NCBI GenBank assembly: GCA_965240325.2
Contig: OZ251247.1
Coordinates: 930,001-994,000, forward strand
Direction of reading: 5' to 3'
DNA length: 64,000 bases
From: Rebecca billardiae RCC1528
Taxonomy: Eukaryota > Protista > Haptophyta
Part shown: positions 1,425 to 59,421 of the stretch, in pieces
Numbering within the stretch: position 1 is the stretch's first letter
Layout: the number at the start of each line of letters is the position of its first letter
The notes under the pieces: model-generated
What the model was told of the DNA's origin: nothing
What the model saw: the letters and a program-made list of their open reading frames with translations, nothing else
The model's database searches: none
Made by a program: the position numbers and the translations under genes

Positions 1425-4400
1425 TAGGGGGGCCAAAGAGGCACTGTAGCGTTACTGACGGCCACGAGCGCGCGTCCTAGCGAGTGTTTAGAGCTGATTT
1501 CGGGCTGGATCATTTGCCCTCTGGAGGGGTCTGGGCCGGCCATGTAAAAAAATCAGGTGCACATACCCTGAATATAGGGCGTAACGGCTAGCATATTTAC
1601 TTATTAGAATGAGCCTGAACTTATCGGAAACGGTATGTAACGGCCGTCCTATATGTGACATATAGACCATGTCGACCTCACTTTGATAGAGCATCTCAGC
1701 GAGATCGTTCTGAGTCCCCAGCAGCAGCAGGTCCCAACATGCGATATAGGCTGTGTATAGGGGGTCCAAGCCGCGGAATTAAAAATCGAAAATCGACTGA
1801 CCGATTTCGCGGTGACCATTTCCGAACATTGTTGCCTCGAATTGCGGCAGCACGGGCCGCGGCCGTTCAGAGCACGGTCGAGCCCGAGATCGGGCGAGTA
1901 GCACGCCTGGGCGGTGGACTTCATCGTCGCGTCGGCGCGGCGGAGCGCGCTCTGGCGTCAGAGGCGCGCGGGCGGGCGAGTCAGGGTGGCCACCATGACA
2001 GCGGTCGACCAAATGATCGCTGGCAGCTCGCTCTCACCGGACATCTTGAACCTCACAGCCCCGCTCTGCGCGCCGTTCGAACTCTCATCCGGATGAGCGC
2101 GGACAACGCAGCCCCGGTTTCAGGTGAAGCGTGCACGCTGCGCGCTGGTTTACACCTGGTTTAGCTTGTCCATGATGAGCATGAATGACCCCCCGGCGCT
2201 CGGCCTGGTGCGTGCAGTGCTCACCTCCCCACGCGCTGCGCATGCACTCGCGCGATCGCTGGCCGCTCGTTCGCAAACGGGAGTGCGCGGCAGTCGTGGG
2301 TGGTAAGCAAGCTCGGCGACCCTGTGTACGCGCGGGGCCTGTCTTCCAGCTCACAGTAGTACCGCCAGAAGCTCCAGCCGGCACGTGTCGGCTTGTTTGT
2401 TGTGCCACTTGGCGTGCCGCTTGGCTGCATGCAGCAGCCGAGCTGCGCTGAGGCGAAGAGCGTGCACCTTGTCACGAACGTCAAGCTTGCTGCGGAGCAA
2501 ACGCGCGCCACCAAGCTCCGCTATGACCGCTGCCACATCTGCACACCGTGTCTTCGTCTCGGGAGTGCCTGCGCCACTGTTGGCGGCCGTCTTGGAGCAG
2601 CGCGCGGACTGCATGATGCTCGGGGCAGGACTGAGTGCTGCTGGGCGCGGCAGTGGAGGCAGAGAGCTCAACGCTCGCCACCGAGCAGCTCGCAGAGTCA
2701 GAGGTAAGCTGGAGCAGCCTCGACTGCAAGCGCTGTAGCCGCAGCAGAGGTGGACCGGCGGCGGCCTCGCGTGGGCTGGGGTACGACGAACGGCGACGGT
2801 GCCGGTGACACCTGAGTACGGGCAAGGAAGCCGCCCGGCACATGGCGAGCTAGTCTGCGCACGCCAGCCTCGACGGCGGAGAGGACTCTCACGCCGGGAT
2901 GGTGGCGGCATGTTTAGTGGCGGAGTTGGCCGTGTGCCGCAGCACGTGCAGCCCGCCACCGGCATCAGGCCCGCGTTCGCGGGCCGGCACTCACTGATGT
3001 GCTGAGTCCAGTGGCATGAGCCGTCTCGGCGCCGCCGTACTCCGTATTCGGATGACCCAGCAAGTAGTGAGCAAGGTACCCATGTATAGGCACTCACTTG
3101 AATACATATGGCAAAATTAACCGCATTCGATATATAGTGGGTAACATGGTGCTTGTATGCGGGTACATTCCCATAATTAAATGGGTAATGTGCTCGATCT
3201 TGGAGTAGTTTTTCATGGACGTCTACGCGCACAGCATTGTGCCCCACTTTTTCGGTATTTTCACCATAAAATCCTCTGGATAGAGGGCAGCGCTTGTCAA
3301 TAAGTAAGCCCGACCGCGTATCGTCATCTAGCTGCCATGACAAGTAGGTAACATTCGGCTGAATCTCTATGTGACACAGCGGGCGCCGCTGCGTGCGCGC
3401 GCGGCCGCGCGACGACACGCGGAGTCGGTTTTTAGTGCTTCTGGCGGCTGGGCTGGGCTCTGGGACATATTTGAGGGTGACTCCGCAAGCGTCACGCTCA
3501 TCAGACGCCTACATGGCATGGTTGTCAAATATCACCAATCGGTGGGCTGCTGGCTTGGACCCCCTACAGTGTGTACTGGCAGGCTGTCAAATATGTAGTT
3601 TCCTGGAAGCCACTGGTCGTTACATACCCACCGTGTATATAGCCGCCATGCTGATGAATACAGTCTCGCCTGATCTCGAGCTGCGAGATACGTTTTCAGA
3701 CTGTGTATACGGCCACGCGTACGGCATATTGCAGACATGATGGACCCAAAGCACCGGCCCCACGTCCTCAGCCCGGGAGTGCTCTCGGTCATAGTCAAGG
3801 TTTAAAGTCACCCGAGCCAACCGCCACCGCTCCCTGGCCGAGACCTACGAGGCAGGTCAAATCTGTCGTCGTCGCAGTGCGGCACAGTGCCGAGCATGCG
3901 ATTCGGCAGCAAACGCCTGCTCCAGGCGGTGGCTGGCGTCTCTGCACCAAACCAGGCTGGATGGGATCGGTCCATATAGGTACGCCCTACCCTGTTCCGC
4001 GCTATTTCTGGGCTTTGGGGCGGATATTCGGCCTACAGAGGCTGATCCGGCGTTGTTCGGCGCTCCTGGCTGGCTGCGCGGAGCCCACCGGCAAGCGCCG
4101 GCGTGTGCAAGGTGTCAAGATTGAGACGGTCTCTGACGCTCCCGCCGGTCTTGGGCGCACCACGGTGCATGGGGGCCCATCTGCATCTGCTTCTGCAGGC
4201 ATGAGCGTCACAGGGGCGCGCTTGCAGGCACGGTCCAGTGCTAGTCGGACCTGTCGAATGAGCCAACCGCTGCCTGCGAGCACGTCCGCGACGTCCTGAG
4301 AGGCAAATGGGAGGCGTCCCGACGCCATCAGCGGGCACACATGACCCATACCCAACGTGCTGACCATCGCAAGTGCCACGGCAGGTGCAAACACGGGCCC

Positions 4401-4958
4401 TACGAGCGGAAGATGGCAGTTGCGGGCTCCGCGGAGGTGTTGCGCGCGAGCTCGCGCCGGTCTGCTGACGGCGATTCCGGCGCAGTAGGGCAGGTTAGGC
4501 GAGTTGACCATGCACATACATACCTAGACACCTGCTCCGAGCACCGATCTCACCACTCCGAGTTGATCATGACCCACACCGAGCGGTAGCGTGAGAGGCG
4601 CACGCAGCGCGCCAATTCAAGCCGGCCGACGCGCGCCGCGCACGGCGCGAGGTGGCCAAGAAGCGGGTGGTGAGCCGCTGGTGGCGCAAAGGCACGGGTC
4701 AGTAGCGCCCACTAGCGTCACGCGCGCGCGCACCCGAGACCATCTCGGCGTCTCAGAGGTCGCGAGCGCGCGGCGGTCCACTGCCTCCGGCCGCTCGTCT
4801 GGAGCGGAACCGAGCTCTGAGCGCCCGAAGGCGTCGGAGCTCGATTTTCGAGCGGGGTCCGAGAAAAAGGCTCCGCGCCACCCTAAAAGCCCGAGGGCGG
4901 AGCGAAAATGCGCCGCGGCTTTGATTTTCTTTTTTAAATGGGCGGTTTGGCCCCCCTA
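1425..4958. mobile_element. Complete non-autonomous TIR DNA element (hAT-like) carrying a nested insertion
   Basis: Perfect 13-bp TIRs: TAGGGGGGCCAAA (1425-1437) and TTTGGCCCCCCTA (4946-4958). It lies 2 bp from the preceding copy. No intact transposase ORF was recognised. Confidence 0.75.
1758..3566. mobile_element. Nested non-autonomous TIR element (hAT-like)
   Basis: Perfect 15-bp TIRs: TAGGGGGTCCAAGCC (1758-1772) and GGCTTGGACCCCCTA (3552-3566). The flanks GGCTGTGTA and CAGTGTGTA form a degenerate 8-9-bp TSD. The empty site GGCTGTGTA|CTGGCAGG is visible at 30-46 in the other copy. Confidence 0.8.
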
Positions 4959-5469
4959 CCGTGAGTGAGTCGCCAGCGTCATCGGTTCGAGCGAGCAGCA
5001 TGACGAGCAGTCGTAGTCGTCGTTGCTGCTGCGCCGCGGCTTGACGACGATAATAACACGCGACGCGCGCCATATCGTCGCTGGCGCGCAGTGTTCGCAG
5101 CGGCGACCTTGTTGACGATGCGACTACTACGATATTGTGCGCGGCATCGTCAGCACTCCCGATGTTCAAAACAACGCGCGGTCGAAGACGCTGCACGAGA
5201 AGCGCGCGCGACCTGGCCAGCGTGTGCGGACGACGTCCCGCAGCCGGGCGAGGCGCCTCGGAGTTAGTATTGCAGTACATACCATAGCGTCGTGCGCCAC
5301 AGCCGTGGCGACCCACCATCGGGCGCTCATGCTCGTCGGCCTACGAGCCGCCTCGCCACGAGGGTCGCCGCCGCCCGCGAGACGGTAACGCCCTGCTGCT
5401 CACTGCGCGCACAAACTAGCGTACGTCGCACCGCAATATGGGGGTATGTATCGGCCACAACCGCCCGAC

Positions 5470-5762
5470 ACGCCGCCCGCCTCGTCCCGCCCGCCCCGTC
5501 CCGTGCGCCCGCGCGCGCCACACGCGCGCAGCCCGCTTGCAGACGAGCTCATCACCGCGGCGATGCGCGTGGCGCGACACGGCCGGGCTGCTGCTGGGGC
5601 TGCGCGCCCGGCGCGACGCGGCTGCCTGCCGAGCCGATCGCAGCGCCGCGCCTCGCCGCCTCCGCGGCGGGTGGCGGCGGCGGCGGCGGTGGCGCGTGCG
5701 CGCCGCCCGCGCCCGCGCGCGTGTTCGCCGAGGGCGCACACCGGACGCCGAGTACGGGCGGT
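5470..5762 (+). pseudogene. Displaced, degenerate fragment of the last intron/exon of the multi-domain glycan gene
   Basis: Matches about 28893-29190 (CCCGCTCGCAGACGAGCTC...GCGATGCGCGT...ACACGGCCGGGCTGCTGCT...GAGTACG) with small indels. Confidence 0.7.
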
Positions 5763-6154
5763 CGCCCTCAACATTGTACTGCCTCTCATAGAGCGGATCG
5801 TCAGACCGTTAAAAACTGCCGGATGCCATAAATATTACCCCAATACTACTATCTCGCCTGCCTGAGCTGTGTGCGACTGTGCGTCTCTTATTCTTAGTAA
5901 ACTTTATGCAAATGGGTGGAGTACCTGTCTGGTACTCATAATACTCACTGGGGAATCGCACCTGCTTATGAAAACTGGCAACCGATTTGGGCGCCAGAAT
6001 ATGATGTCATTGTTGCGTCCCAGACGCCCAAGGCTTCTCACAAAGTCATCAATGAACGCGCTCGAGCCTCGAACGAGCTCGTGGCCGATCGCAGGCTCAT
6101 CATTTGCCAGGGGCCGCCGCCATCAATCACGCGCGCTCCCCCTTACGCCCGAGC

Positions 6155-9100
6155 ATGTGGCTCTTCTGCGGCAAGAATCCCTGCGGCACGCAAGCCGGTG
6201 TGCGCTCCAGTGACGAGGAGGAGCGTGGCGACGACGGCGCGCCCGAGGCACCGCCCGATGCCCGCGCCACGCTCGTCCAAGATGGCGCCGAGCCGAGCGA
6301 CGCGGCCGCGGGCGGCGACGACGGCGCGCGGCGGGGGGTGCGCGAGCGGCTCGCGGGCTGGGGCGCGGGGCGGTGGCTGCTCGTCGTCGGCGCCGCGTGC
6401 AGCGCTGTCCTCATCACCGGCGCAGCGTACCACTGGCGGCACCACATCAAGGGCTCGCTCAGCCGGCTGCAGCAGCGAGGGACGGCGGACGTGCCCGAGG
6501 ATGCGCGCTGCCTCGGGCGCGTGGGGCGGCAGGACGGGCAGTGGCTCATGGCGCCGGGCTCGACGGTCGAGCACGCTGCGCGCTGGGCCTTTGTGTTGGA
6601 CGCGTCCATCCTCGTCCTCGCCGTCGCCGCGCTGCTGCTGCTGCGCGCGTGGAAGAGCCCGGATGCGGCCGCGTCCACGGCGAAGAGCCTCTTCTCGGCG
6701 GCCATGTCCGCGTTCGACCTGTTCACAGACGCGCTGCTGGCGTCGCAGTGGTGGCGGTGCGCGCACCGGCTGTGGGCGGGCCTCGCCTTCGTCTTCACCG
6801 CCGCGGGCGCGCTGCCCACGCTCCAAGTCGCGCGCGCCGCGGCAGAGGTGGCCGCGCTGCCGCCCGATGCTTACGAGTTTGACCGCAAAGAGGTGGAAGA
6901 GCGGCTGCGCGACGCAAAGGCGCTCGAGGCGACGGTGGAGAGCGCGCCGCAGACGTACCTGCAGGGGTACGCGATGCTGCGCATCGGCGCCGTGCACGCC
7001 ACGCCGCTGGCGCTCGCCTCGCTGCTCTTCTCCGCCTCGATGATTGGCCACCACACGTACGTGTACACCATCAGCAGCGCGCTTGATTTTGCTGGTGGTC
7101 GGCCCACCGTGCAGTGGTGGAGCGTGACCGTGCCCGTGGTCGGCTGGACGGTGGGCGTGGACGACCTGGCGTGCCGCGTGGGCACGGTGATGTCCGTGCT
7201 GTGCCGCGCGCTGACGCACGGCCTCTTCGCCTGCGCGTTCCACAGCTGGCTGCTGGCGGCGCTCTCGGCGGCGGCGCTCGCGCTGGTCGCCTCCGTGCGC
7301 TACAGCGGCCACCTCAAGGTCATGGGTGCACTCGAGCGCGGAGGGCAGCTGGCGGCCTGGCGGAGCGCGGCGTGGGAGGCGGGCATCGTGTACGCCGCCG
7401 TGGGCATGGTCGACCTGAGCTCGGCGGGGTGGCTCGCGCACACGGCGCCCACCCACGTCCTGCTCGGCTGCGCGGAGGCCGCGCTGGCGGTGGCCGCGCT
7501 GCGCTGGCCGTCCGCGTGGCGCGAGGCGCAGAGCGCGCCTGCGCTGGCGGCACTCGCGTGGGCGTGGGGCTGCGCGTGGGTGGCGCACAAGGCCGTCGTC
7601 GTGCGCTTGCTGCAGCTCAAGGCAGATCCAGTGGTCGTCAGCCTCATGTGTGCGCGCGCGCGCGTGGCGACGACGTGGCGCCTGCCGCGGCGGGCTCGGG
7701 CGCGCGCGCGGCGGCGGGCGGGCGGCGCGGCCGCGGGGCGCTGTGCCAGCGGCGCGTGCGGCGCGCTCGCGTGTGCACGGGCGGGCACGCATCGCACGCG
7801 CAAGCTCGACACCCACTCACGCCCCCGCCGCGCGCCCGCTCCTTCCGCCGCGCCTCCCGCAGTTCCAACGGGATCGGCGACGCTGGCGCCACTGCCATCG
7901 CGGACGCCGTGCGCCACAGCCGCTCCCTGCAGAGGCTTGTCCTCCAGTACGTGTGCACGCGCGTGGGGGCGGGGGCGGGGGTGGCGCGGAGGGGCGGGGG
8001 TGGGTGAGCGGGTGCCAGCTGGGGCATGCGCTGCGGAAGCATGTCGAGCGCGCCGCGCCGCGCGCGCGCGCGCCGCGCGCCCTCGCGCGGTGATGTCCGA
8101 GCGCGCGCCGCGCGCGCGGCCGCGTCGGCATGCTCGGGCGCGCGCGCGGCGGCGGGCGGGCGGCGCGGCCGCGGGCGGGCGGGCGGCGCGGCCGTGGGGC
8201 GCTGTGCCAGCGGCGCGTGCGGCTCGCTCGCGCGTGCACGGGCGGGCACGCGCCGCGCGCGCGCGCTCGACACCCACTCACGCCCCCGCCGCGCGCCCGC
8301 CCCTCCCGCCGCGCCTCCCGCAGTGGCAACGGGATCGGCGACGCTGGCGCCACTGCCATCGCGGACGCCGTGCGCCACAGCCCCTCCCTGCAGGAGCTCC
8401 ACCTCGAGTACGTGTGCACGCGCGCGGGAGCGGGCACGGGGGTGGCGCGGAGGGGTGGGGGTGGGTGGGCGGGTGCCAGCCGAGGCATGTGCTGCGGACG
8501 CACGTCGAGCGCGGCGCGCCGCGCGCGCGCGCGCCGCGCGCCCTCGCGCGGTGATGTCCGAGCGCGCGCCGCGCGCGCGGCCGCGTCGGCGGGCTCGGGC
8601 GCGCGCGCTGCGGCGGGCGGGCGGCGCGGCGGCGGGCGGGCGGGCGGCGCGGCCGTGGGGCGCGCTCGCGTGTGCTCGGGCGGGCTCGCACCGCGCGCGC
8701 GCACTCGACACCCACTCACGCCCGCGCCGCGCGCCCGCCCCTCCCGCCGCGCCTCCCGCAGTTTCAACGGGATCGGCGACGCTGGCGCCACTGCCATCGC
8801 GGACGCCGTGCGCCACAGCCGCTCCCTGCAGGAGCTTGTCCTCTAGTACGTGTGCACGCGCGCGGGGGTGGGCGCGGAGGTGGCGCGGAGGGGTGGGGGT
8901 GGGTGGGTGGGCGCCAGCTGGGGCATGTGCTGCGGACGCACGTCGAGCGCTGCGCGCCGCGCGCGCGCGCGCCGCGCGCCCTCGCGCGGTGATGTCCGAG
9001 CGTGCGCCGCGCGCGCGGCCGCGTCGGCGTGCTCGGGCGCGCGCGCTGCGTCGGGCGCGGCCGCGGTGGCGGGGCGCTGTGGCAGCGGCGCAGGCGGCGC

Positions 9101-9290
9101 GCTCGCGCGTGCTCGGGCGGGCACGCTGCGCGTGCGCGCGCTCTGCCCTTGCTCACGCCCCAGCCGCGCGCCCGACACCCGTCCCCCACTGCGCGCCTCC
9201 CGCAGTTACAATCGCCTCAGCGAGGCGGGCAAGAAGGCGGTGCGCGAGGCGTGGGAGCAGAGCGGCAAGGAGGGCAGGCTGGAGCTGTGA
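6155..9290 (+). CDS. XK/Xkr-like multipass membrane protein fused to a C-terminal RI-type LRR array, paralogue A (3 LRR cassette exons)
   Basis: Exons: 6155-7647, 7863-7946, 8324-8407, 8762-8845, 9206-9290 (TGA). All introns are GT-AG and phase 2. XK-family-like motifs are FDLFTDALLA and LEATVESAPQTYLQGY, with many hydrophobic helices. The repeat unit is xNxIGDAGATAIADAVRHSRSLQxLxLx. An apparent TAG at 8844-8846 is removed by splicing (TA|T = Tyr), which supports the model. Confidence 0.85.
7648..9205 (+). repeat. Tandem intron-exon repeat, ~438-461-bp period (LRR cassette array A)
   Basis: Exon starts at 7863, 8324, 8762 and 9206; the introns are near-identical to one another. Confidence 0.9.
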
Positions 9291-10828
9291 TGTGCAGCTC
9301 CGGTGCCGCCGAGAGGCGATGGGTGGGGAGACTGCTTGCGTCGGCAGGGCCTGGGACGAGCACCGGCCCGCCCGCGCTGCGCTGGCGCTGCTCGGGCAGT
9401 GGCAGTGCATGCAGTCGTCGGTGATGAGGGCACCGCGCGGCGCCGTGGGCGGCGCCGCCCAACCGACGAGCGCTTGCGCGCTGCACGGCGGCAGTGACGA
9501 CGGCCGGCATCGTTCGAGAGCGGCGGGCGTAGACGGCGCGGGCGCAGGTCGGCGCGCACAAGTGGAGGCGTCGTTTTTCATTCGATCGGCGTGGCGCCGT
9601 GCGCAGTGCTCGCCTCCGGCTTCCGACTCGACTCGACTCGGCCCAGCGCGCCGCGGGCTCGGCCGGCGCCGCGGCGCGGCGCGCGGTATTGGCCGAGCTC
9701 GCACGCCGCACGGCTACGGTGACGACGGGCTCGGCGGAAAGTGGGTGTCGTCAGCGTTGGCGAAGCTCTGCGCGCACGGGTGGAGGCGTTTCGACCAGGT
9801 CACATGGCGTGGAGCCGTGCTCGCTCGCCGGCTTCGGAAATCGACTCGGTCGGCGCTCAGTCAGCAGCGCGTGCGCGTGGTCGCGCAGAAGAGGCCGCGC
9901 GTGGCGACGCCGCAGCTGCGCAGTGCTGATGTGAGGAGTAGTCATCGCAGCGACGAAACAGCCCAGCAGTGCCGCCCCGCTTCGAATCGGCTTCGATCTC
10001 GCTCGGAGCTGATCGACACCCGGACGATCACGATCGGACCTGTCGTCAGCGTTAATGGTGGTGCGCTCGGCAGCACCACTAGCTGGTGCCGTTCGAAACA
10101 GTGCGCACGACGGCGCACGCAGCAAGCAGCTAGTAAGATGGCGCGGCCGAGCAAGCCGTGTGCATGCAGCTACAGCCTACAGGATCGCGCAGTGGGCGCG
10201 CGCCGCACCACCACTGCTGACCGCACCGCGACGCACGCCCCGCAGAGCCCGGAGCTCGTCGTCAGCGTGACGCCGGCACGGCAGCGCCCACAGAATCCGC
10301 CAGCTCGTCCGGGGCGAGGCGAGCGCCGTCGATTCGCGCCGCGGCACCGAGCTCAGCCGCTCCCGCTGCAGCCGCCGCCGCCGTGAGACTTCACTCGTGC
10401 GACGTCTCCAACGACGTGCTGCGCGAGCTGCACCCTGAAATCGGAGGGGGCCGCCGGCGCGCCATGCTCGCGCGCCTCCCAGCACAGTGAGGATCTGCAT
10501 CGCAGTGGGTCAGCGTGTGCGAAGTGCTGTGCACGTCCACGCGCATGGTGCCACACGACACGACGCTCAATCATCGTCAAGGACAGCCAGCCGCCGCGAG
10601 TAACGCCGCCATCGTTGCTCGGCGGCGGAGAAGAGTACCAGACAGACGTGTGTCCTCTGGTTTTGATGACGATGCTGAAATAAAAGCCGCCCGGGCGCCG
10701 CATCCAAAGTGCCGGAGCCACGGGTTTAAATTGCATGATGATTTACAAGTGCGGCATCTCCGCCGCCGCCGCAGGAGCCAGGACGCAGCGATCCGGTGTG
10801 ACGCTGGCCCACACGCGACGAATCGACG

Positions 10829-11605
10829 ATGGCCGTCATCACCAGCATCAGCTCGGGGGCGGTGGGCGCCGCTGCGCCCACCGCGCGCCCGCACGCGCGT
10901 GCGTGGCGGGGAACGCCGTGGCGAGGGACGCCGTGCCGGGGCGACGTCGGCCCGCGCCCCGCGCCGTGCGCCGCCTCGGCGCCCGCGCGTCGCCCTGTGG
11001 CTGTGGCAGCGCGTGCGCGGCTGCTGCTGCTGCCGCTGCTGCTCGGCGGCGCGACGGGCGCGGCGGCGGCTGCGGCGGCAGCAGCGCCGCCACCGACGTA
11101 CGCGGCGGGGGCGGACGCGCTGCTGCTCGACGACGTGCACGCAGGCGACTTTGTGCTCGGCGCCCGCGCCAGCCTCGCCACCGCACCGCCGCCGCCGGCC
11201 CCGTCCGCGCGCTGCCTCGCCGCTGTAGCAGCGATGCCGCGCGCGCCCGCCGCCGACGGCGGCGGCCCCGGCGCCGGCGGCGACGGGGCGGGGCGCGCGC
11301 GCCCCGCGCCGCTGCTCCCGCCCGAGTGCGCGTGGCAGGCGGCCGCGCTGTGGGCGTTCCCCGCCTCCGGGGTGGGCTGGGTGGGCGCGCTGCTGCAGAG
11401 GGCGGCGGGCTGGGCGGTGGGGGTGGCGCCGGGCGCGGGGAGGGGCGCGGGCGCGGCGGGGCGGCAGGGCGGGCGGACGCGCGGGTGCGAGCACCGCGCG
11501 CTCGCCATCGTCGCCGAGTCCACCGCCACGCCACACGCGGTGCTGCGCCACTGGGCGGGCGCCAACAGGGCGCGCGCCCTCACGCACGCGGCGCCGCGCG
11601 GGCTG

Positions 11606-11644
<39 letters not shown>

Positions 11645-12195
11645 TGGGCGGAGCTGCCGCCGGTGCAGCCGCGCTCGGCGCGCAACATCCCGTGGCACGG
11701 CGCGCAGTCCGAGGCGCTCGCGCCGCACGGCACCGCGCACGCAGCCATCAGGCAAGCCGCGCGAGCGCGCCGCGCCGCCGCCGCCGCCTCAGCCGCGCCG
11801 CGCCCCGCGCGCGGCTGCGGCAGCTCAGCAGCGCGCGGCCGCCTGCCAACCGAGCGCGCGCGTGCCCCTCCGCCCGGACACCCACACCCCCCGCGCGCCA
11901 CGCGCCCCCGCAGCCGCCACCTCGTTGAGTGCAGCGCGTGGCGCCCCGCGCGCGCCCTGCTCGTGGAGCGCTGTCCGTACGCGGCGATCGGCGCGCTGCT
12001 CGGCGCACACGCACACGCGGGGGGCGGCGGCGCGGAGGGCGCGGAGGGCGGGGGGGGCGGTGTTGAGGATGCGGCGGCGGGGGGCTCGCTCGAGCCGGTG
12101 GACGCGGAGGCGACCGCGCTCGAGCTCGCGGCCGACTACGCGGCCGCGTGGGCGAGGTGGGTGCGCACCGCCCGCTGCTGCTGTGCTGCTGCGCT
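10829..12195 (+). pseudogene. 3'-truncated duplicate of the multi-domain glycan gene (sulfotransferase-like part only)
   Basis: Near-identical to 22435-23795. Similarity stops within intron 2, where unrelated sequence begins. Confidence 0.75.
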
Positions 12196-12231
12196 GCTGT
12201 GTGGAAGCACTGTCTGTGGCGCGTGGCACTG

Positions 12232-12885: not shown

Positions 12886-14600
12886 ATGGCACGAGGGGCC
12901 GGTCGGGGCGGCGGGCCGCACGATGGGGTTCGGGCGCACCGCGCCGCCCTGGCGCTGTGCGTGCTCGCGCCGCCCGTGCTGACCGCCGAGCCGCCGCGCG
13001 CGCGCGGCGACGTCGCGGGCGTCCCGGACGTCGGCGTCACGCCCTCGCCGTGCGCGGTGCTGTGGCGCGCCAAGCAGGCGCGCGCGCCGCGCGCGCCGCT
13101 CGGCTCTGTCGCTGCTGCACGGCGAGCACGAGCTGCACGCGGGGGCGAAGCAGTCGGTGTTCGACTTGTTCGAGCCCGAGTGGGCGTGCGAGTCGGAGGA
13201 GCGCCTCGGCGGCCCCGTCTTCCCCCAGCTCGACCCGCCGTACCTCGCGTACGGCGACGGCCCCAAGTGTGTGTGCGCCGTGGACAGGCTGCCCGCGCCC
13301 TGCCTGGTGTACAGCGTGGGCAGCGACGACGACTGGACGTTCGAGGCGGCGGTGCGCAGCCGCACGCCGTGCGAGGTGCACACGTTCGACAGCACGCTCG
13401 CGCGCCGCGGGCTCAGCTTCAGCGGCGCCGCCGTCGCCGCCTTCCACCCGCTCGGGCTGAGCGACCGCGACGGCGCAGACGCGGAGGAGGCGGCGGAGGC
13501 GCGCCGGGCAGAGGCGCGCGCGGCCGCGGCGGCGGCGGCGCGGGCGGGTGACGGTGGCGGTGGTGGTGGCAGCGGCAGCAGTGCTGCGCGGCCCGCCTCC
13601 GCCGGCGCCGCGCCCGCCGCGCCAGCGGGCGCGCGGCGCGGCCTAGAGCCCGGAGTGGCCGAGGCGGAGGGCGGGCCTATGCGCACGCTGCAGTCGATGA
13701 TGCGCGCGCTCGGGCACAGCGGCCGCGTGCTCGACGTGCTCAAGGTGGACTGCGAGGGGTGCGAGTGGCGCGCGCTGCCGCCCGTGCTGCGCGCCATCCG
13801 CGACGGCCGACTGCGCGTCGGCCAGCTGCTCGTGGAGCTGCACATGCAGTGGGAGGCGGGCATCTACGGCCGCCCCAAGTACGCGCGCGCGCTGCCCAAC
13901 GCGAGCGCGCTCTGGCGCGGGGCGGACGGCGCGCGGCTGCGCGCGTTCCACAAGGAGCGCAACGGCTGGGGCTGCGGCGGCTGGCGCTGCGCCGAGTACG
14001 CCTACGCGCGCCATATCGTCGCTGGCGCGGCGCGTGGGCCACGTGCGCGCGCATCGCCGTCACCACCGCCTCGAGCACGCCCGCGCGCGGCGGCGCGCGC
14101 GCGCTCGGCGGCGCACCGCCCAGCAGCGCGCAGCGCGGCCGCGCGCGCGCCAGGGCGGCGAGCGCCTCGGCGGCGCGGGCGGCCTCCGCCGCTGCGCTCC
14201 ATGGGGTTCGGGCGCACCGCGCCGCCCTGGCGCTGTGCGTGCTCGCGCCGCCCGTGCTGACCGCCGAGCCGCCGCGCGCGCGCGGCGACGTCGCGGGTGG
14301 CCTGGACGTCGGCGTCACGCCCTCGCCGTGCGCGGTGCTGTGGCGCGCCAAGCAGGCGCGCGCGGCGCGCGCGCGCCGCGCGCGCCGCTCGGCTCGCAAC
14401 GGCTGGGGCTGCGGCGGCTGGCGCTGCGCCGAGTACGCCTTTGTGCACGAGGCGCACGCGTGCAGGGCGTTCGTCTCCACGCACTGCCCGGGGCGCCGCG
14501 CTGAGGCGGAGGTGTGCGGCGGCGCCGGCGCCGCCGCCGCGCGCCGATCTGCTCGACGACGTGCGTCCGCCGCTACTCCGCCTGCAAGATTGCTCTGATG
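12886..14600 (+). pseudogene. Methyltransf_22/METTL24-like SAM-dependent methyltransferase, internally rearranged
   Basis: The frame at 13157-14003 has FDLFEPEWAC, GDGPKCVC, CLVYSVGSDDDWTFE, CEVHTFD, LDVLKVDCEGCEW and QLLVELH. The C-terminus (CAEYAFVHEAHAC) is displaced to 14398-14500 by an insertion of duplicated 5' sequence. Confidence 0.75.
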
Positions 14601-15284
14601 GGCGGCCTAGTAGTAGTGCCCCGCCGTGAGTCCGCGGCACGGCCGTGGCCGCCCTGGTGCCCGTACCCGTGCTGAGTAGTAGATAAGTCCCGCGCGGCGC
14701 ACGCGCGCGTCGTAACGGTCATGATGTCGCGTCTTCGCGCGGGCCAAATCACGGGCTGCGTGAATCAGTGGCGGTTCGAGCGAGCAGCTAATGAGCAGCC
14801 AGTAGTCGCGTCGTCGTAGTTGCTGCTGCGCCGCGGCTTGACGATAACAACACGCGACGCGCGCCATATCGTCGCTGGCGCGCAGTGTTCGCAGCGGCGA
14901 CCTTGTTGACGATGCGACTGCGACTACGATATATATATTGTGCGCGGCATCGTCAGCACTCCCGACCGATGTTCAAAACAACGCGCGGTCGAAGACGCTG
15001 CACGAGAAGCGCGCGCGACCTGGCCAGCGTGTGCGGACGACGTCCCGCGGCCGGGCGAGGCGCCTCGGAGTTAGTACTGCAGTACATACCATAGCGTCGT
15101 GCGCCACTGCCGTGGCGACCCACCATCGGGCGCTCATGCTCGTCGGCCTACGAGCCGCCTCCGGCCACGAGGGTCGCCGCCGCGGCCCGCGAGACGGTAA
15201 CGCCCTGCTGCTCACTGCGCGCACAAACTAGCGTACATCGCACCGCAATATGGGGGTATGTATCGGCCACAACCGCCCGACCCG

Positions 15285-15575
15285 CCGCCCGCCTCGTCCC
15301 GCCCGCCCCGTCCCGTGCGCCCGCGCGTGCCGCGTGCGCGCAGCCCGCTTGCAGACGAGCCGCCGTCACCGCGGCGATGCGCGTGGCGCGACACGGCCGG
15401 GCTGCTGCTGGGGCTGCGCGCCCGGCGCGACGCGGCTGCCTGCCGAGCCGATCGCAGCGCCGCGCCTCGCCGCCTCCGCGGCGGGTGGCGGCGGCGGCGG
15501 CGGTGGCGCGTGCGCGCCGCCCGCGCCCGCGCGCGTGTTCGCCGAGGGCGCACAGGACGCCGAGTACGGGCGGTC
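15285..15575 (+). pseudogene. Second displaced fragment of the last exon of the glycan gene
   Basis: Paralogous to 5470-5762 and to about 28893-29190. Confidence 0.7.
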
Positions 15576-15966
15576 GCCCTCAACATTGTACTGCCTCTCA
15601 TAGAGCGGATCGTCAGACCGTTAAAAACTGCCGGATGCCATTAATATTACCCCAATACTACTATCTCGCCTGCCTGAGCTGTGTGCGACTGTGCGTCTCT
15701 TATTCTTAGTAAACTTTATGCAAATGGGTGGAGTACCTGTCTGGTACTCATAATACTCACTGGGGAATCGCACCTGCTTATGAAAACTGGCAACCGATTT
15801 GGGCGCCAGAATATGATGTCATTGTTGCGTCCCAGACGCCCAAGGCTTCTCACAAAGTCATCAATGAACGCGCTCGAGCCTCGAACGAGCTCGTGGCCGA
15901 TCGCAGGCTCATCATTTGCCAGGGGCCGCCGCCATCAATCACGCGCGCTCCCCCTTACGCCCGAGC

Positions 15967-18900
15967 ATGTGGCTCTTCTGCGGCAAGAACCCCTGCGGCA
16001 CGCAAGCCGGCGTGCGCTCCAGTGACGAGGAGGAGCGTGGCGACGACGGCGCGCCCGAGGCACCGCCAGATGCCCGCGCCACGCTCGTCCAAGATGGCGC
16101 CGAGCCGAGCGACGCGGCCGCGGGCGGCGACGACGGCGCGCGGCGGGGGGTGCGCGAGCGGCTCGCGGGCTGGGGCGCGGGGCGGTGGCTGCTCGTCGTC
16201 GGCGCCGCGTGCGGCACTGTCCTCCTCACCAGCGCAGCGTACCACTGGCGGCACCACATCAAGGGCTCGCTCAGCCTGCTGCAGCAGCGAGGGACGGCGG
16301 ACGTGCCCGAGGATGCGCGCTGCCTCGGGCGCGTGGGGCGGCAGGACGGGCAGTGGCTCATGGCGCCGGGCTCGACGGTCGAGCACGCTGCGCGCTGGGC
16401 CTTTGTGTTGGACGCGTCCATCCTCGTCCTCGCCGTCGCCGCGCTGCTGCTGCTGCGCGCGTGGAAGAGCCCGGATGCGGCCGCGTCCACAGCGAAGAGC
16501 CTCTTCTCCGCGGCCATGTCCGCGTTCGACCTGTTCACAGACGCGCTGCTGGCGTCGCAGTGGTGGCGGTGCGCGCACCGGCTGTGGGCGGGCCTCGCCT
16601 TCGTCTTCACCGCCGCGGGCGCGCTGCCCACGCTCCAAGTCGCGCGCGCCGCGGCAGAGGTGGCCGAGCTCGCCGCGGAAGAGGTGGCCGCGGAGCCACC
16701 CGATGCTGAGGTGGAGTATCACCGCAAAGAGGCGGAAGGGAAGCTGCGCGACGCGAAGGCGCTCGAGGCGACGGTGGAGAGCGCGCCGCAGACGTACCTG
16801 CAGGGGTACGCGATGCTGCGCATCGGCGCCGCGCACGCCACGCCGCTGGCGCTTGCCTCGCTGCTCTTCTCCGCCTCGATGATTGGCCACCACACGTACG
16901 TGTACACCACCAGCAGCGTGGCTGTTGATGCTGCTGGTCGGCCCGCCGTGCAGTGGTGGAGCGTGACCGTGCCCGTGGTCGGCTGGGCGGTGGGTTTGGA
17001 CGACCTGGCGTGCCGCGTGGGCACGGTAGCGTCCGTGCTGTGCCGCGCGCTGACGCACGGCCTCTTCGCCTGCGCGTTCCACAGCTGGCTGCTGGCGGCG
17101 CTCGCTGCGGCGGCGCTCGCGCTGGTCGCCTCCGTGCGCTACAGCGGCCACGTCGAGGTCATGGGTGCACTCGAGCGCGGAGGGCAGCTGGCGGCCTGGC
17201 GGAGCGCGGCGTGGGAGGCGGGCATCGTGTACGCCGCCGTCGGCATGGTCGACCTGAGCTCGGCGGGGTGGCTCGCGCGCACGGCGCCCACCCACATCCT
17301 GCTCGGCTGCGCGGAGGCAGCGCTGGCGGGGGCCGCGCTGCGCTGGCCGTCCGTGTGGCGCGAGGCGCAGAGCGCGCCGGCGCTCGCGGCACTCGCGTGG
17401 GCGTGGGGCTGCGCGTGGGTGGTGCACAAGGCCGTCGTCGTGCGCTTGCTGCAGCTCAAGGCAGATCCAGTGTTCGTCGACCTCAGGTGTGCGCGCGCGC
17501 GCGTGGCGACGACGCGGCGCCTGCCGCGGCGGGCTCGGGCGCGCGCGCGGCGGCGGGCGGGCGGCGCGGCAGTGGGGCGCTGTGCCAGCGGCGCGTGCGG
17601 CGCGCTCGCGCGTGCTCGGGCGGGCACGCATCGCGCACGTGCGCTTGACACCCACTCACGCCCCCGCCGCGCGCCCGCCCCTCCCGCCGCGCCTCCCGCA
17701 GTGACAACCAGATCGGCGACGCTGGCGCCACTGCCATCGCGGACGCCGTGCGCCACAGCCGCTCCCTGCAGACGCTTGTCCTCGGGTACGTGTGCACGCG
17801 CGCGGGGGCGGGGGCGGGGGTGGCGCGGAGGGCCGGGGGTGGGTGAGCGGGCGCCAGCCGGAGCATGTGGTGCTGCGGACGCACGTCGAGCGCGGCGCGC
17901 CGCGCGCGCGCGCGCCGCGCGCCCTCGCGCGGTGATGTCCGAGCGTGCGCCGCGCGCGCGGCCCGTCGGCGGGCTCGGGCGCGCGCGCGGCGGCGGGCGC
18001 GCGCGCGGCGGCGGGCGGGTGGCGCGGCCGCGGGGCGCTGTGGCAGCGGCGCGTGCGGCGCGCTCGCGCGTGCTCGGGCGAGCACGCATCGCGCGCGCGC
18101 GCTCGACACCCACTCACGCCCGCGCCGCGCACCCGCCCCTCCCACCGCGCCTCCCGCAGTGACAACCAGATCGGCGACGCTGGCGCCACTGCCATCGCGG
18201 ACGCCGTGCGCCACAGCCGCTCGCTGCAGACGCTCTGGCTCGAGTACGTGTGCACGCGCGCGGGGCCGGGCGCGGGGGTGGCGCGGAGGGGCGGGGGTGG
18301 GTGGGCGGGCGCCAGCCGGGGCATGTGCTGCGGGCGCACGTCGAGTGCGGCGCGCCACGCGCGCGCGCGCCGCGCGCCCTCGCGCGGTGATGTCCGAGCG
18401 TGCGCCGCGCGCGCGGCCGCGTCGGCGGGCTCGGGCGCGCGCGCGGCGGCGGGCGGGCGGCGCGGCCGCGGGGCGCTGTGGCAGCGGCACGGGCGGCGCG
18501 CTGGCGCGTGCACGGGTGGGCATGCGCCGCGCGCGCGCGCCCCACACCCACTCACGCCCCCACCGCGCGCCCGCCCCTTCCGCCGCGCCTCCCGCAGTTC
18601 CAACGCGATCGGCGACGCTGGCGCCACCGCCATCGCGGACGCAGTGCGCCACAGCCGCTCCCTGCAGTGGCTCCGCCTCAGGTACGTGTGCACGCGCGCG
18701 GGGGCGGGCGCGGGGGTGGCGCGGAGGGGCGGGGCTGGGTGGGCGGGCGCCAGCCGGGGCATGCGCTGTGGACGCACGTCGAGCGCGGCGCGCCGCGCGC
18801 GCGCGCGCCGCGCGCCCTCGCGCGGTGATGTCCGAGCGTGCGCCGCGCGCGCGGCCGCGTCGGCGGGCTCGGGCGCGCGCGCGGCGGCGGGCGGGCGGCG

Positions 18901-20877
18901 CGGCCGCGGGGCGCTGTGGCAGCGGCGCGTGCGACGTGCTCGCGCGTGCTCGGGCGAGCACGCGCCGCACGCGCGCGCCCGACACCCACTCACGCCCGCG
19001 CGGCGCGCCCGCCCCTCCCGCCGCGCCTCCCGCAGTGACAACCAGATCGGCGACGCTGGCGCCACTGCCATCGCGGACGCCGTGCGCCACAGCCGCTCGC
19101 TGCAGGAGCTCTGGCTCGAGTACGTGTGCACGCGCGCGGGGGCGGGCGCGGGGGTGGCGCGGAGGGGCGGGGGTGGGTGGGCGGGCGCCAGCCGGGGCAT
19201 GCGCTGTGGACGCACGTCGAGCGCGGCGCGCCGCGCGCGCGCGCGCCGCGCGCCCTCGCGCGGTGATGTCCGAGCGTGCGCCGCGCGCGCGGCCGCGTCG
19301 GCGGGCTCGGGCGCGCGCGCTGCGACGCGCGGGCGGCGCGGCCGCGGGGCGCTGTGGCAGCGGCGCGTGCGGCTTGCTCGCGCGTGCTCGGGCGGGCACG
19401 CGCCGCGCGCGCGCGCTCGACACCCACTCACGCCCGCGCGGCGCGCCCGCCCCTCCCGCCGCGCCTCCCGCAGTACCAACCAGATCGGCGACGCTGGCGC
19501 CACTGCCATCGCGGACGCAGTGCGCCACAGCCGCTCCCTGCAGGGGCTTGACCTCCGGTACGTGTGCACGCGCGCGGGGGCGGGGGCGGGGGTGGCGCGG
19601 AGGGGCGGAACTGGGTGGGCGGGCGCCAGCCGGGGCATGCGCTGTGGAAGCATGTCGAGTGCGGCGCGCCGCGCGCGCGCGCGCCGCGCGCCATCGGGCG
19701 GGCGGTGATGTCCGAGCGCGCGCCGCGCGCGCGGCCGCGTCGGCGGGCTCGGGCGCGCGCGCTGCGGCGGGCGGGCGGCGCGGCCGCGGGGCGCTGTGGC
19801 AGCGGCGCGTGCGGCGCGCGTGCACGGGCGGGCACGCATCGCACGTGCGCGCTCGACACCCACTCACGCCCGCGCCGCGCGCCCGCCCCTCCCGCCGCGC
19901 CTCCCGCAGTCGCAACCAGATCGGCGACGCTGGCGCCACCGCCATCGCGGACGCCGTGCGCCACAGCCGCTCCCTGCAGGAGCTCTGGCTCAAGTACGTG
20001 TGCACGCGCGCGGGGGCGGGGGCGGGGGTGGCGCGGAGGGGCGGGGGTGGGTGAGCGGGTGCCAGCTGGGGCATGCGCTGCAGAAGCATGTCGAGTGCGG
20101 CGCGCCGCGCGCGCGCGCGCCGCGCGCCCTCGCGCGGTGATGTCCGAGCGTGCGCCGCGCGCGCGGCCGCGTCGGCGGGCTCGGGCGCGCGCGCGGCGGC
20201 GGGCGGGCGGCGCGGCCGCGGGGCGCTGTGGCAGCGGCGCGTGCGGCGCGCTCGCGCGTGCTCGGGCGGGCACGCGCCGCGCGCGCGCGCCCTACACCCA
20301 CTCACACTCGCGCGGCGCGCCCGCCCCTCCCGCCGCGCCTCCCGCAGTTCCAACCAGATCGGCGACGCTGGCGCCACTGCCATCGCGGACGCCGTGCGCC
20401 ACAGCCGCTCCCTGCAGACGCTTGGCCTCGGGTACGTGTGCACGCGCGCGGGGGCCGGGGCGGGGCTGGCGTGGAGAGGCGGGGGTGGGTGGGTGGGCGC
20501 CAGCCGGGGCATGCGCTGCGGACGCACGTCGAGCGCGGCGCGCAGCGCGCGCGCGCGCCGCGCGCCCTCGCGCGGTGATGTCCGAGCGTGCGCCGCGCGC
20601 GCGGCCGCGTCGGCGGGCTCGGGCGCGCGCGCGGCGGCGGGCGGGCGGCGCGGCCGCGGGGCGCTGTGGCAGCGGCGCGTGCGGCTTGCTCGCGCGTGCA
20701 CGGGCGGGCACGCTGCGCGCGCCGCGCTCTGCCCTTGCTCACGCTCCCGCCGCGCGCCCGACACCCGTACCCCGACCGCTCGCCTCCCGCAGTTCCAATG
20801 ACCTCAGCGAGGCGGGCGAGAAGGCGGTGCGCGAGGCGTGGGAGCAGAGCGGCAAGGAGTACGGGCTGGATGTGTGA
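15967..20877 (+). CDS. XK/Xkr-like multipass membrane protein fused to a C-terminal RI-type LRR array, paralogue B (7 LRR cassette exons)
   Basis: Exons: 15967-17486, 17702-17785, 18160-18243, 18598-18681, 19036-19119, 19474-19557, 19910-19993, 20348-20431, 20793-20877 (TGA). Every internal exon is 84 nt, bounded by CCCGCAG|T and NN|GTACGT. The XK-like motifs are the same as in paralogue A. Confidence 0.85.
17487..20792 (+). repeat. Tandem intron-exon repeat, ~438-bp period (LRR cassette array B)
   Basis: Successive exon-start spacings are 458, 438, 438, 438, 436, 438 and 445 bp. Confidence 0.9.
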
Positions 20878-22434
20878 TGTGCACCTCCGCTGCTGCCGAG
20901 AGGCGATGGGTGGGGAGACTGCTTGCGTCGGCAGGGCGTGGGACGAGCACCGGCCCACCCGCGCTGCGCTGGCGCTGCTCGGGCAATGGCAGTGCATGCA
21001 GTCGTCGGTGATGCGGGCACCGCGCGGCGCCGTGGGCGGCGCCGCGCAACTGACGAGCGCTCGCGCGCCGCACGGCGGCAGTGACGACGGCCGTCATCGT
21101 TCGAGAGCGGCGGGCGTAGACGGCGCGGGCGCAGGTCGGCGCGCACAAGTGGAGGCGTCGTTTTCCATTCGATCGGCGTGGCGCCGTGCGCAGTGCTCGC
21201 CTCCGGCTTCCGACTCGACTCGACTCGGCCCAGCGCGCCGCGGGCTCTGCCGGCGCCGCGGTGCGGCACGCGGTATTGGCCGAGCTCGCGCGCCGCACGG
21301 CTACGGTGACGACGGGCTCGGCGGAAAGCGGGTGTCGTCAGCGTTGGCGAAGCTCTGCGCGCGCACGGGTGGAGGCGTTTCGACCAGGTCACATGGCGTG
21401 GAGCCGTGCTCGCTCGCCGGCTTCTGACTCGACTTGGTCCGGGCGCTCAGTCAGCTAGCTAGCAGCACTGCGTGCGCGTGGTCCCGCAGAAGAGGCCACG
21501 CGTGGCGACGCCGCAGCTGCGCAGTGCTGATGTGAGGAGTAGTCATCGCAGCGACGAAGCAGCCCAGCAGTGCCGCCCCGCTTCGAATCGGCTTCGATCT
21601 CGCTCGGAGCTGATCGACACCCGGACGATTGGCACGATCGCGGACCTGTCGTCAGCGTGGTGCGCCGGGCACCACTAGCTGGTGCCGTTCGAAACAGTGC
21701 ACGACGGCGCACTACGCAAGCAGCTAGTAAGATGGCGCGGCCGAGCAAGCCGTGTGCATGCAGCTACAGCCTACAGGATCGCGCAGTGCGGGCGCGCGCC
21801 GCACCACCACTGCTGACCGCACCGCGACGCCACGCGGCCCCGAGCCGAGCTCGTCGTCAGCGTGACGCCGCACGGCAGCGCCCACAGAATCCGCCAGCTC
21901 GTCAGGGGCGAGGCGAGCGCCGTCGATTCGCGCCGCGGCACCGAGCTCAGCTGCTCCCGCTGCAGCCGCCGCCGCCGTAAGACTTCACTAGTGCGACGTC
22001 TCGTCCAACGACGTGCTGCGCGAGCTGCACCCTGAAATCGGAGGGTCGGCCGCCGGCGCGCCATGCTCGCGCGCCTCCCAGCACAGTGAGGATCTGCATC
22101 GCAGTGGGTCAGCGTGTGCGAAGTGCTGTGCACGTCCACGCGCATGGTGCCACACGACACGACGCTCAATCATCGTCAAGGACAGCCAGCCGCCGCGAGT
22201 AACGCCGCCATCGTTGCTCGGCGGCGGAGAAGAGTACCAGACAGACGTGTGTCCTCTGGTTTTGATGACGATGCTGATCGAAATAAAAGCCGCCCGGGCG
22301 CCGCATCCAAAGGGCCGGAGCCACGGGTTGAAATTGCATGATGATTTACATCAAGTGCGGCATCTCCGCCGCCGCCGCAGGAGCCAGGACGCAGCGATCC
22401 GGTGTGACGGTGGCCCACACGCGACGAATCGACG

Positions 22435-23211
22435 ATGGCCGTCATCACCAGCATCAGCTCGGGGGCGGTGGGCGCCGCTGCGCCCACCGCGCGCCCGCAC
22501 GCGCGTGCGTGGCGGGGGACGCCGTGGCGAGGGACGCCTCGCAGGGGCGACGTCGGCCCGCGCCCCGCGCCGTGCGCCGCCTCGGCGCCCGCGCGTCGCC
22601 CTGTGGCTGTGGCAGCGCGTGCGCGGCTGCTGCTGCTGCCGCTGCTGCTCGGCGGCGCGACGGGCGCGGCGGCGGCGGCGGCGGCCGCAGCGCCGCCACC
22701 GACGGGGGCGGCGGGGGCGGACGCGCTGCTGCTCGACGACGTGCACGCGGGCGACTTTGTGCTCGGCGCCCCCGCCAGCCTCGCCACCGCACCGCCGCCG
22801 CCGGCCCCGTCCGCGCGCTGCCTCGCCGCGGTGGCAGCGATGCCGCGCGCGCCCGCCGCCGACGGCGGCGGCCCCGGCGCCGGCGGCGAAGGGGCGGGGC
22901 GCGCGCGCCCCGCGCCGCTGCTCCCGCCCGAGTGCGCGTGGCAGGCGGCCGCGCTGTGGGCGTTCCCCGCCTCGGGGGTGGGCTGGGTGGGCGCGCTGCT
23001 GCAGAGGGCGGCGGGCTGGGCGGTGGGAGTGGCGCCGGGCGCGGGGAGGGGCGCGGGCGCGGCGGGGCGGCAGGGCGGGCGGACGCGCGGGTGCGAGCAC
23101 CGCGCGCTCGCCATCGTCGCCGAGTCCACCGCCACGCCGCACGCGGTGCTGCGCCACTGGGCGGGCGCCAACAGGGCGCGCGCGCTCACGCACGCGGCGC
23201 CGCGCGGGCTG

Positions 23212-23247
<36 letters not shown>

Positions 23248-58494: not shown

Positions 58495-59421
<927 letters not shown>

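Follow-up and report, generated by a model that had tools for sequence, protein, structure and literature searches.

Two tandem paralogues, genes A and B, in a 64,000-nt stretch of the genome of the haptophyte Rebecca billardiae RCC1528 (contig OZ251247.1, positions 930,001 to 994,000; the whole of this stretch is called the window below) encode a predicted XK-related membrane domain followed by a tail of leucine-rich repeats (LRRs), each full repeat being carried by an 84-nt exon of its own. We found that silent and intron sites give these repeat exons (hereafter cassettes) the same young age, while the replacement sites of five variable codons per cassette, the x codons of the LRR motif, are near saturation. 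The pattern is consistent with strong diversifying selection acting on an array that was amplified recently. The explanation we favour, and consider probable, is that an XK domain has been joined to a young, phase-locked LRR array whose x residues would have been diversified by selection on ligand binding, whose repeat number can change in frame, and which may act as a cytosolic sensor tail.

The two genes are laid out as follows, in window coordinates.

6155-7647 (+): gene A exon 1, 1493 nt; N-terminal extension, XK-related membrane domain and first LRR beta-strand (PVVVSL), ending in phase 2
7648-7862 (+): gene A intron 1, 215 nt, GT..AG; its 3' ~175 nt homologous to the cassette introns; orthologous to B intron 1
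7863-7946 (+): gene A cassette exon 1, 84 nt, phase 2-2; SNGIGDAGATAIADAVRHSRSLQRLVL plus 2 nt
7947-8323 (+): gene A cassette intron (Ai2), 377 nt, with a 23-nt insertion; mosaic, its 5' third 97% identical to B intron 7
8324-8407 (+): gene A cassette exon 2, 84 nt; holds the sole scaffold replacement (R to P, column 60)
8408-8761 (+): gene A cassette intron, 354 nt
8762-8845 (+): gene A cassette exon 3, 84 nt
8846-9205 (+): gene A last intron, 360 nt, orthologous to B intron 8
9206-9290 (+): gene A cap exon, 85 nt; divergent terminal LRR (YNRLSEAGKKAVREAWEQSGKEGRLEL) and stop codon
15967-17486 (+): gene B exon 1, XK-related domain, with a 27-nt insertion relative to A
17702-20431 (+): gene B array of seven 84-nt cassette exons (17702-17785, 18160-18243, 18598-18681, 19036-19119, 19474-19557, 19910-19993 and 20348-20431), introns 352-374 nt
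20793-20877 (+): gene B cap exon (SNDLSEAGEKAVREAWEQSGKEYGLDV) and stop codon

Both genes were modelled with canonical GT..AG sites (donors GTACGTGTGCACGCGC, or GTGTGCGCGC for intron 1; acceptors CCTCCCGCAG). Gene A (6155-9290) comprises five exons with three cassettes and encodes 609 aa, gene B (15967-20877) has seven cassettes and encodes 730 aa, and in both the reading frame is intact and the splice sites are canonical. Every intron is in phase 2, each boundary splitting a codon 2+1, and the cassette introns (352-377 nt, typically ~354 nt) are homologous to one another. The arrays have a 438-bp period, with 3.3 copies in A and 7.3 in B according to Tandem Repeats Finder (TRF). These copy numbers and the gene models bear out the first-pass annotation of this DNA, which had counted three cassettes in A against seven in B; the strand junctions that it had read (VSL-I-SNGI, RLVL-H-GNGI, ELHL-D-FNGI and ELVL-Y-YNRL) occur exactly so in the spliced model of gene A, and its cap endings, GRLEL in A and YGLDV in B, are those of our models. 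A six-frame motif scan of the window found exactly these 10 cassettes and none beyond genes A and B, and all 10 are mutually distinct in exon and in intron. Blastn matches to the cassette introns (74-78%) also fall within 50800-53650, a region of GC 0.88 with internal repeats of its own, and probably reflect low-complexity similarity.

Each cassette is exactly 28 codons long and encodes one 28-residue unit, x1-x2-N-x4-I-G-D-A-G-A-T-A-I-A-D-A-V-R-H-S-R-S-L-Q-x25-L-x27-L, so that successive units read L-Q-x-L-x-L-x-x-N-x-I-G-D-A-G-A-T-A-I-A. Both the period (28-29 residues) and the pattern LxxLxLxxNxIgdxGaxxla are those of LRRs of the ribonuclease inhibitor type (RI-type), with LxxLxLxxNxI followed by a helix in each cassette. 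Consistently, the Pfam family LRR_6 (PF13516) scored 32.9 bits (cut-off 23.4) on four B cassettes read across their in-frame introns; single cassette exons alone scored 16-18 bits. Matches in the Protein Data Bank (PDB) were weak and were to LRR proteins, including NOD2.

The introns fall inside the variable beta-strand, the cassette exon carrying x2 and x4 of one strand and supplying x25, x27 and two bases of x1 for the next. Since T is the first base of every cassette and cap exon (7863, 8324, 8762 and 9206 in A; 17702 to 20793 in B), x1 is always encoded by NNT. This NNT is fixed although the GC content at third codon positions (GC3) of the gene is 0.92. It is well established for the LRR motif, as in the Kobe and Kajava type scheme, that the x positions line the concave, ligand-binding sheet of the solenoid, and from this motif we infer that in A and B the x residues face the solvent on the LRR beta-sheet.

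We computed nucleotide diversity (pi) among the 10 cassettes of A and B. Variation is confined to 16 of the 84 exon columns, and its distribution is extreme. All 10 sites at positions 1 and 2 of the x codons are variable (pi 0.676, near saturation), while x-codon position 3 varies at one of five sites, only where Trp forces TGG (pi 0.093). For scaffold codons, pi is 0.071 at position 3 (23 sites) and 0.004 at positions 1 and 2 (46 sites), where we observed a single replacement, R to P in the second cassette of A. Variable columns thus amount to 10/10 at x-codon positions 1 and 2 versus 6/74 elsewhere (Fisher p = 3e-9). Over full introns pi is 0.057 within B, 0.082 between the genes and 0.102 within A, and the ratio of x divergence to silent or intron divergence is 8-10 as a raw value and >20 after Jukes-Cantor correction.

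The third bases of the x codons are informative in their own right. Each position has its own base: x2 and x27 end in C, x4 and x25 in G, and x1 in T. These bases stay fixed even in four-fold degenerate codons, with ACC at x2 and ACG at x25, and with GGC at x2 and x27 and GGG at x4 and x25. For this reason they look inherited from one prototype cassette rather than produced by codon bias. The finding that x third positions are as conserved as the introns while positions 1 and 2 are saturated points to point substitutions that would have been fixed by positive selection.

Measured over whole codons, the x codons diverge by 0.40-0.53 and the cassette introns by 0.06-0.10; for comparison, divergence is 0.02-0.03 in the scaffold, 0.044 at synonymous sites (dS) of exon 1 and 0.003-0.046 in the flanks. 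The earlier proposal that specificity codons and repeat number turn over far faster than their surroundings is therefore upheld, and the outcome that had been named as contradicting it, x codons diverging no faster than introns, is clearly not what we observed (8-10-fold faster).

The comparison can also be made independently of which cassettes are orthologous, between positional orthologues at the array edges. In a tree of the introns, the first introns of the two genes (Ai1 and Bi1) pair across genes with support of 100/99, as do the last ones (Ai4 and Bi8; 92/97), and the exon ends at the edges can for that reason be treated as positional orthologues. There, 10/10 x residues and 16/28 x-codon bases differ between A and B, while the adjoining introns diverge by 6.0% and 8.4-9.7%; at the intron rate, the excess in the edge x codons has a binomial p <=6e-10. 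Similarly, the first 137 nt of Ai2 and B intron 7 (Bi7) show only 4 differences, and the x codons just upstream of them differ at 5/8 bases. Across the five variable residues no A cassette matches any B cassette at more than 1/5, in agreement with the previous statement that the paralogues have no cassette in common.

That the first and last introns are positional orthologues also indicates that the array is older than the gene duplication. We infer that the difference of four units arose after this duplication, most simply via unequal recombination between 438-bp units; between A and B, silent sites now differ by ~4%. No branching order emerges among the internal introns, which form a star; the only supported within-gene pair is Bi4 and Bi5, whose support of 85/91 and divergence of 2.5% suggest a single recent duplication in B. 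Ai2 is a mosaic, its 5' third being nearest to Bi7 and its 3' third to Bi5 or Bi6. Such a mosaic star does not allow individual A cassettes to be matched to B cassettes or a crossover point to be placed, and the difference in number may reflect loss in A or gain in B.

The first-pass annotation had further proposed that cassettes are homogenised within each gene. This holds for x4 only: the NGI that it had noted occurs in 3/3 cassettes of A, where x4 is Gly (GGG), and the NQI in 6/7 of B, where x4 is Gln (CAG) with Ala (GCG) in the remaining 1/7; GGG at x4 is absent from B. Divergence of x codons is indeed higher between genes (0.53) than within them (0.40-0.44), and when we permuted the gene labels over all 120 labelings only 3/120 were as good as the real one with x4 included, against 51/120 without x4. 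Among the features compared, clustering by gene is confined to this position. On the intron tree the gene label needs 4 changes, equal to shuffled labels, and an A-specific clade of Ai2 and Ai3 has p = 0.19 in the approximately unbiased (AU) test, which makes it unsupported rather than excluded. Whole-cassette homogenisation within each gene thus finds no support in the intron tree or in the permutation without x4. The x4 residues specific to each gene may form a ladder with a structural or functional role along the solenoid, or result from very short conversions. Of the mechanisms that had been put forward, unequal crossover would account for the change in repeat number, but neither this nor gene conversion within an array can create x codons that no other cassette has.

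The window (GC 0.6-0.88, with spliced genes) is eukaryotic. In a blastn self-comparison of the window, A and B lie in tandem segmental duplicons that are ~93.4% identical; the alignments pair 4983-9211 with 14772-19041 (93.4% identity) and 7688-12197 with 19299-23795 (93.5%).

4983-12197 (+): duplicon A, carrying gene A
14772-23795 (+): duplicon B, carrying gene B
5770-6154 (+): AT-rich upstream segment (GC ~0.46-0.59), candidate promoter/5' untranslated region (5'UTR), near-identical in both paralogues

About 2.6 kb of unique DNA separates the duplicons and holds an open reading frame (ORF) with a Methyltransf_22 domain (12983-14257, +, 79 bits); short internal segments are repeated in the ORF translations of this spacer.

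The near-identity of the upstream DNA, already pointed out in the first reading, amounts to 384/385 bases (5770-6154 against 15582-15966). An Rfam search of the whole window returned zero matches, so the AT-rich block is without a known RNA gene. This segment sits inside a ~1.2-kb block, 5583-6780 (vs 15395-16592), that diverges by only 0.9%, and by 0.5% within 5583-6382; the block covers a GC-rich stretch and the AT-rich segment and reaches ~620 nt into the coding sequence, and the DNA bordering it diverges by 4-7%. Elsewhere along the duplicons, divergence is 1.5-4.6% at 4983-5582 (A coordinates), 3.5-7% in the remainder of exon 1, 6.0% in intron 1, 8.4-9.7% in the last intron, 10.6% in the cap exon (9/85 nt), and 4.6% and 2.0% in the first 1 kb and the next 1.9 kb of the 3' flank. 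The block looks like a recent conversion tract between the paralogues or a strongly constrained promoter/5' region, and the upstream DNA is on this account a poor clock. We consequently dropped it as a neutral yardstick and used introns and third positions instead.

Two repeats were observed in the DNA preceding the genes. Upstream of duplicon A there is a further tandem duplicate (33-1422 vs 3570-4958, 94.8% identity over 1.39 kb), and a GC-rich dispersed repeat (~85% identity) occurs upstream of both paralogues (5460-5766 and 15272-15578) and at a third site, 28885-29202.

Considering the above results, the only serious rival to diversifying selection on a young array is concerted evolution acting on x diversity that is old or was imported from a pool of 84-nt cassettes elsewhere in the genome, with frequent conversion keeping introns and scaffolds alike and selection doing no more than spare the x codons. 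We disfavour this explanation and regard it as unlikely. It draws support from the mosaic introns (the two parts of Ai2) and from the low-divergence block, which suggests that conversion is active at the locus, but the conversion tracts would need to homogenise the third base of an x codon and yet spare its first two bases. Moreover, no x-codon set of A is found in B, as illustrated by GGG at x4, and the edge introns keep their positional orthology across the genes, which argues against strong homogenisation.

It is less likely still that the difference in array length is an artefact, either through collapse or expansion of the 438-bp repeat in the assembly or because haplotypes of a single locus were mis-joined to give A and B. 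Tandem 438-bp repeats at 90% identity are hard to assemble, and among the B introns divergence falls as low as 2.5%. However, the window contains zero N, the 10 cassettes are all distinct with the A units ~10% apart from each other, and the duplicons are 2-10% diverged along their length, carry indels in exon 1 and are kept apart by 2.6 kb of unique DNA with its methyltransferase ORF.

Relaxed constraint, with the LRR tail as a generic interaction or spacer module, unconstrained x positions and A as a decaying, shortened copy, appears very improbable to us. Exon 1 does show a nonsynonymous to synonymous ratio (dN/dS) of 0.82 between A and B (dS 0.044, dN 0.036, protein alignment), and A is the shorter copy and has the one scaffold replacement (R to P), but neutral x codons could not exceed intron and third-position divergence, and here the excess is 8-10-fold; A also keeps its frame, its four canonical introns and 68/69 scaffold residues. 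Finally, programmed diversification, that is, somatic or clonal rearrangement of cassettes or targeted mutation of x codons as in lamprey variable lymphocyte receptor (VLR) genes, is hardly credible, given that in spite of the extreme and sharply localised hypervariability, the phase-locked cassettes and an intron that splits the variable strand, both genes are complete in the germline with ordinary introns, zero silent donor cassettes flank them (the motif scan of the window found only the 10 in-gene ones), and variation restricted to the first two codon positions marks selection and not mutation.

The other half of the two proteins would be a divergent XK-related (Xkr/CED-8 family) multi-pass membrane domain. 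Pfam XK-related (PF09815) matched exon 1 of A with 29.5 bits and that of B with 31.8 bits (cut-off 24.8), and 83 of the 100 nearest ESM-Atlas clusters to this domain are XK-related. A profile built from a few homologues, run against PDB sequences, retrieved only rXKR9 (rat XKR9; E = 0.21). With an AlphaFold (AF2) model of the domain, Foldseek placed human XKR8, XKR4 and rat XKR9 at ranks 1, 3 and 4 against the PDB, with probabilities of 0.97-0.99 and target TM-scores of 0.40 (XKR8) and 0.52 (XKR4 and XKR9). Between A and B, the replacements in exon 1 and the 27-nt indel are concentrated in two predicted loops (residues ~233-250 and 315-345).

Relatives of this domain are few. A word-indexed protein search with exon 1 gave zero matches, and a metagenome locus scan with a single-protein query found zero relatives, while an exhaustive HMMER search of 1.84 billion representative proteins returned four hits, of which the strongest shares 35% identity. 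In one relative (P0001, locus L004), PF09815 lies in a stand-alone XK-related gene devoid of LRRs; this paralogue (L004:546-1874, Logan ERR14847148) adjoins a glutaredoxin gene. The same sample contains an 82%-identical fragment of the family (L001:3051-3672) with an internal deletion that joins window positions 6330-6646 to 7248-7555, and it probably comes from a related species. A transcript-like contig of another organism (L006:1-1171, JGI 3300016802), interrupted by a single frameshift, encodes an XK-like C-terminal half at 43% identity, then one LRR of the RI type and a cap (LDLSRNGLSDESKSVVQQAW) like those of A and B. The fusion of XK and LRR domains thus exists in a second organism and is older than the Rebecca billardiae genome, with fewer repeats in L006, and the single LRR of that contig suggests that the long arrays are an expansion in the Rebecca billardiae lineage.

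Simple hydropathy of the protein gave no usable topology, and we argue the topology from the Xkr fold, which is made up of two repeats, each with four transmembrane helices and a partly inserted helix. XKR9 has eight membrane-spanning helices and two partly inserted ones, and its C-terminus is an inhibitor that occupies a hydrophobic pocket on the intracellular side until it is freed by caspase cleavage (PMC8298096). The XKR8 tail is described as a plug (PMC10938166). Because both ends of Xkr proteins are cytoplasmic and their C-tail is inhibitory, the LRR tail of A and B is probably cytosolic; the array would start right after the last helix of the XK core and probably occupies the site of the regulatory tail. 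If so, the "surface residues" of the first-pass annotation belong to the surface of a cytosolic solenoid and not to that of the cell.

We therefore return to the young, selected array on an XK domain as the preferred explanation. According to this proposal, the five x positions would have been driven apart via point substitutions under intense diversifying selection on ligand binding, and unequal recombination between 438-bp units would have given 3 cassettes in one gene and 7 in the other. Since all cassette exons are phase-symmetric, any such change in repeat number leaves the reading frame intact. The LRR tail would be a cytosolic sensor located where the regulatory tail of animal Xkr proteins sits, ligand binding may be coupled to lipid scrambling or to another membrane response, and A and B may be receptors of different specificities.

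Several points weigh against this proposal. The adaptive rate that it implies is extreme, given a ratio of about 8-10 raw and >20 corrected, and the uniformity of x4 within each gene is unexplained by simple diversifying selection. Old or imported x diversity is compatible with what one 64-kb window contains, and a dN/dS of 0.82 in exon 1 could mean relaxed constraint in one copy. Introns, expression and the numbers of cassettes are derived from the assembly and from splice-site logic. On the structural side, the AF2 model of the XK domain has low confidence (pLDDT 49.6, pTM 0.50) and the Foldseek E-values are weak (0.13-0.5), and it is by deduction, not by observation, that we propose a scramblase activity, a cytosolic topology and a ligand.

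A more specific possibility, which we put forward only tentatively, is that XK-LRR proteins are an undescribed kind of algal intracellular immune or recognition receptor, in which a hypervariable, fast-diversifying LRR sensor replaces the inhibitory tail and a pathogen or viral ligand directly triggers lipid scrambling. Such triggered scrambling could mean phosphatidylserine exposure, membrane remodelling or cell death. The protein would then be a sensor and an effector in one, analogous to NLRs, with a membrane scramblase as executioner and tandem paralogues holding different specificities. If this functional interpretation is true, recognition would be linked directly to membrane lipid asymmetry in a unicellular alga, with a bearing on virus sensing and cell-death control in microalgae. 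Our literature search turned up no account of such an XK-related-LRR fusion in algae.

The rest of the window contains further genes and repeats. A 1249-codon open frame of GC 0.85 at 25064-28810 (+) has an N-terminal nucleotide-diphospho-sugar transferase domain (PF03407, 29 bits), and two RCC1-repeat (RLD) genes lie in inverted orientation at 42807-44660 (-) and 54928-57042 (+), with DNA identity of 73-77%. Towards the end of the window there are a (TA)88 microsatellite (58496-58672), a 110-bp satellite of about 20 copies in two blocks (59683-61956) and a 208/421-bp satellite (62005-64000) that reaches the window end.

Comparison with known systems helps to place the two genes. Like the VLRs of jawless vertebrates, they use LRR cassettes with hypervariable concave-face residues as the unit of diversity. 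In VLRs, however, somatic assembly adds silent donor cassettes to a germline gene that is incomplete, whereas A and B are complete genes with spliced-exon cassettes and germline diversity; we found complete spliced frames and no extra cassettes in the window where a VLR-type locus would have an incomplete gene flanked by silent donors.

Plant resistance-gene LRRs (Cf-4/9, Cf-2/5, flax L/M, NLRs) are under diversifying selection on the solvent-exposed x of xxLxLxx, and their copy number changes by unequal crossing-over between tandem paralogues. Unlike A and B, they mostly lie in large exons with no one-repeat-per-exon design, belong to the plant-specific or typical repeat class and are joined to NB-ARC or kinase effectors. 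The RI-type LRR genes of animals (ribonuclease inhibitor, NLRP/NLRC) resemble A and B in their RI-type repeats of 28-29 residues (LRR_6) and in the cytosolic location that is predicted for the LRR tail of A and B, and their modular phase-symmetric exons can be gained, lost or skipped in frame. In these animal genes, however, an exon holds a pair of repeats (about 171 nt) instead of a single one, no comparable near-identity of the scaffold is known to go together with hypervariable x codons, and the effector is different.

With the XK-related scramblases (Xkr8, Xkr4, Xkr9, CED-8), A and B have in common PF09815, a fold predicted with low confidence and a putative regulatory element at the probably cytosolic C-terminus. 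They are nonetheless very divergent (11-14% identity to solved structures), have extra N-terminal hydrophobic helices, and carry the LRR array in place of a short caspase-cleaved tail.

In design, A and B resemble the ROCO receptors of brown algae, in which each LRR occupies a 72-bp phase-2 exon of its own and positive selection acts on sites of the concave face (PMC3341825; PMC11378527). The LRR-ROCO (and NB-ARC-TPR) candidate immune receptors of Ectocarpus and Saccharina, whose repeats are exon-shuffled, likewise encode one LRR per exon in phase-2 symmetric exons, and the ROCO genes also resemble A and B in a repeat number that varies between paralogues, in tandem duplicated loci, in selected concave-face sites and in an intracellular location, predicted for A and B, together with an effector domain. 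We found the same design in our ten cassette exons, each of which encodes a single LRR between phase-2 introns, and diversifying selection on residues that the LRR motif places on the concave face (pi of 0.68 at x positions 1 and 2 vs 0.06-0.10 at silent and intron sites). The brown-algal exon, however, has 72 nt and encodes a typical repeat of 24 residues, against 84 nt and an RI-type repeat of 28 residues in A and B, and its effector is a ROC-COR GTPase, absent from A and B, which have an N-terminal XK-related membrane domain instead. Since exon and repeat size and the ROC-COR effector both differ, A and B are analogues of the brown-algal ROCO receptors and not members of that family. In addition, scaffolds and introns are almost identical between the cassettes of A and B, so that the contrast with the x codons is much sharper than in the ROCO genes. 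A literature search found no paper on one-LRR-per-exon arrays in microalgae.

Altogether, the evolutionary pattern alone is strong but expected, since LRR copy-number change and diversifying selection are already known. The two genes nevertheless offer an unusually clean natural case of a repeat protein evolving like a designed binder library, and they extend the one-LRR-per-exon receptor logic beyond the brown-algal ROCO genes, to RI-type repeats and to an XK-related putative scramblase effector. What is new here is that an LRR array is combined with an XK-related domain, and how sharply the x codons differ from silent sites; otherwise the genes are a recognisable, if striking, variant of LRR-receptor evolution.

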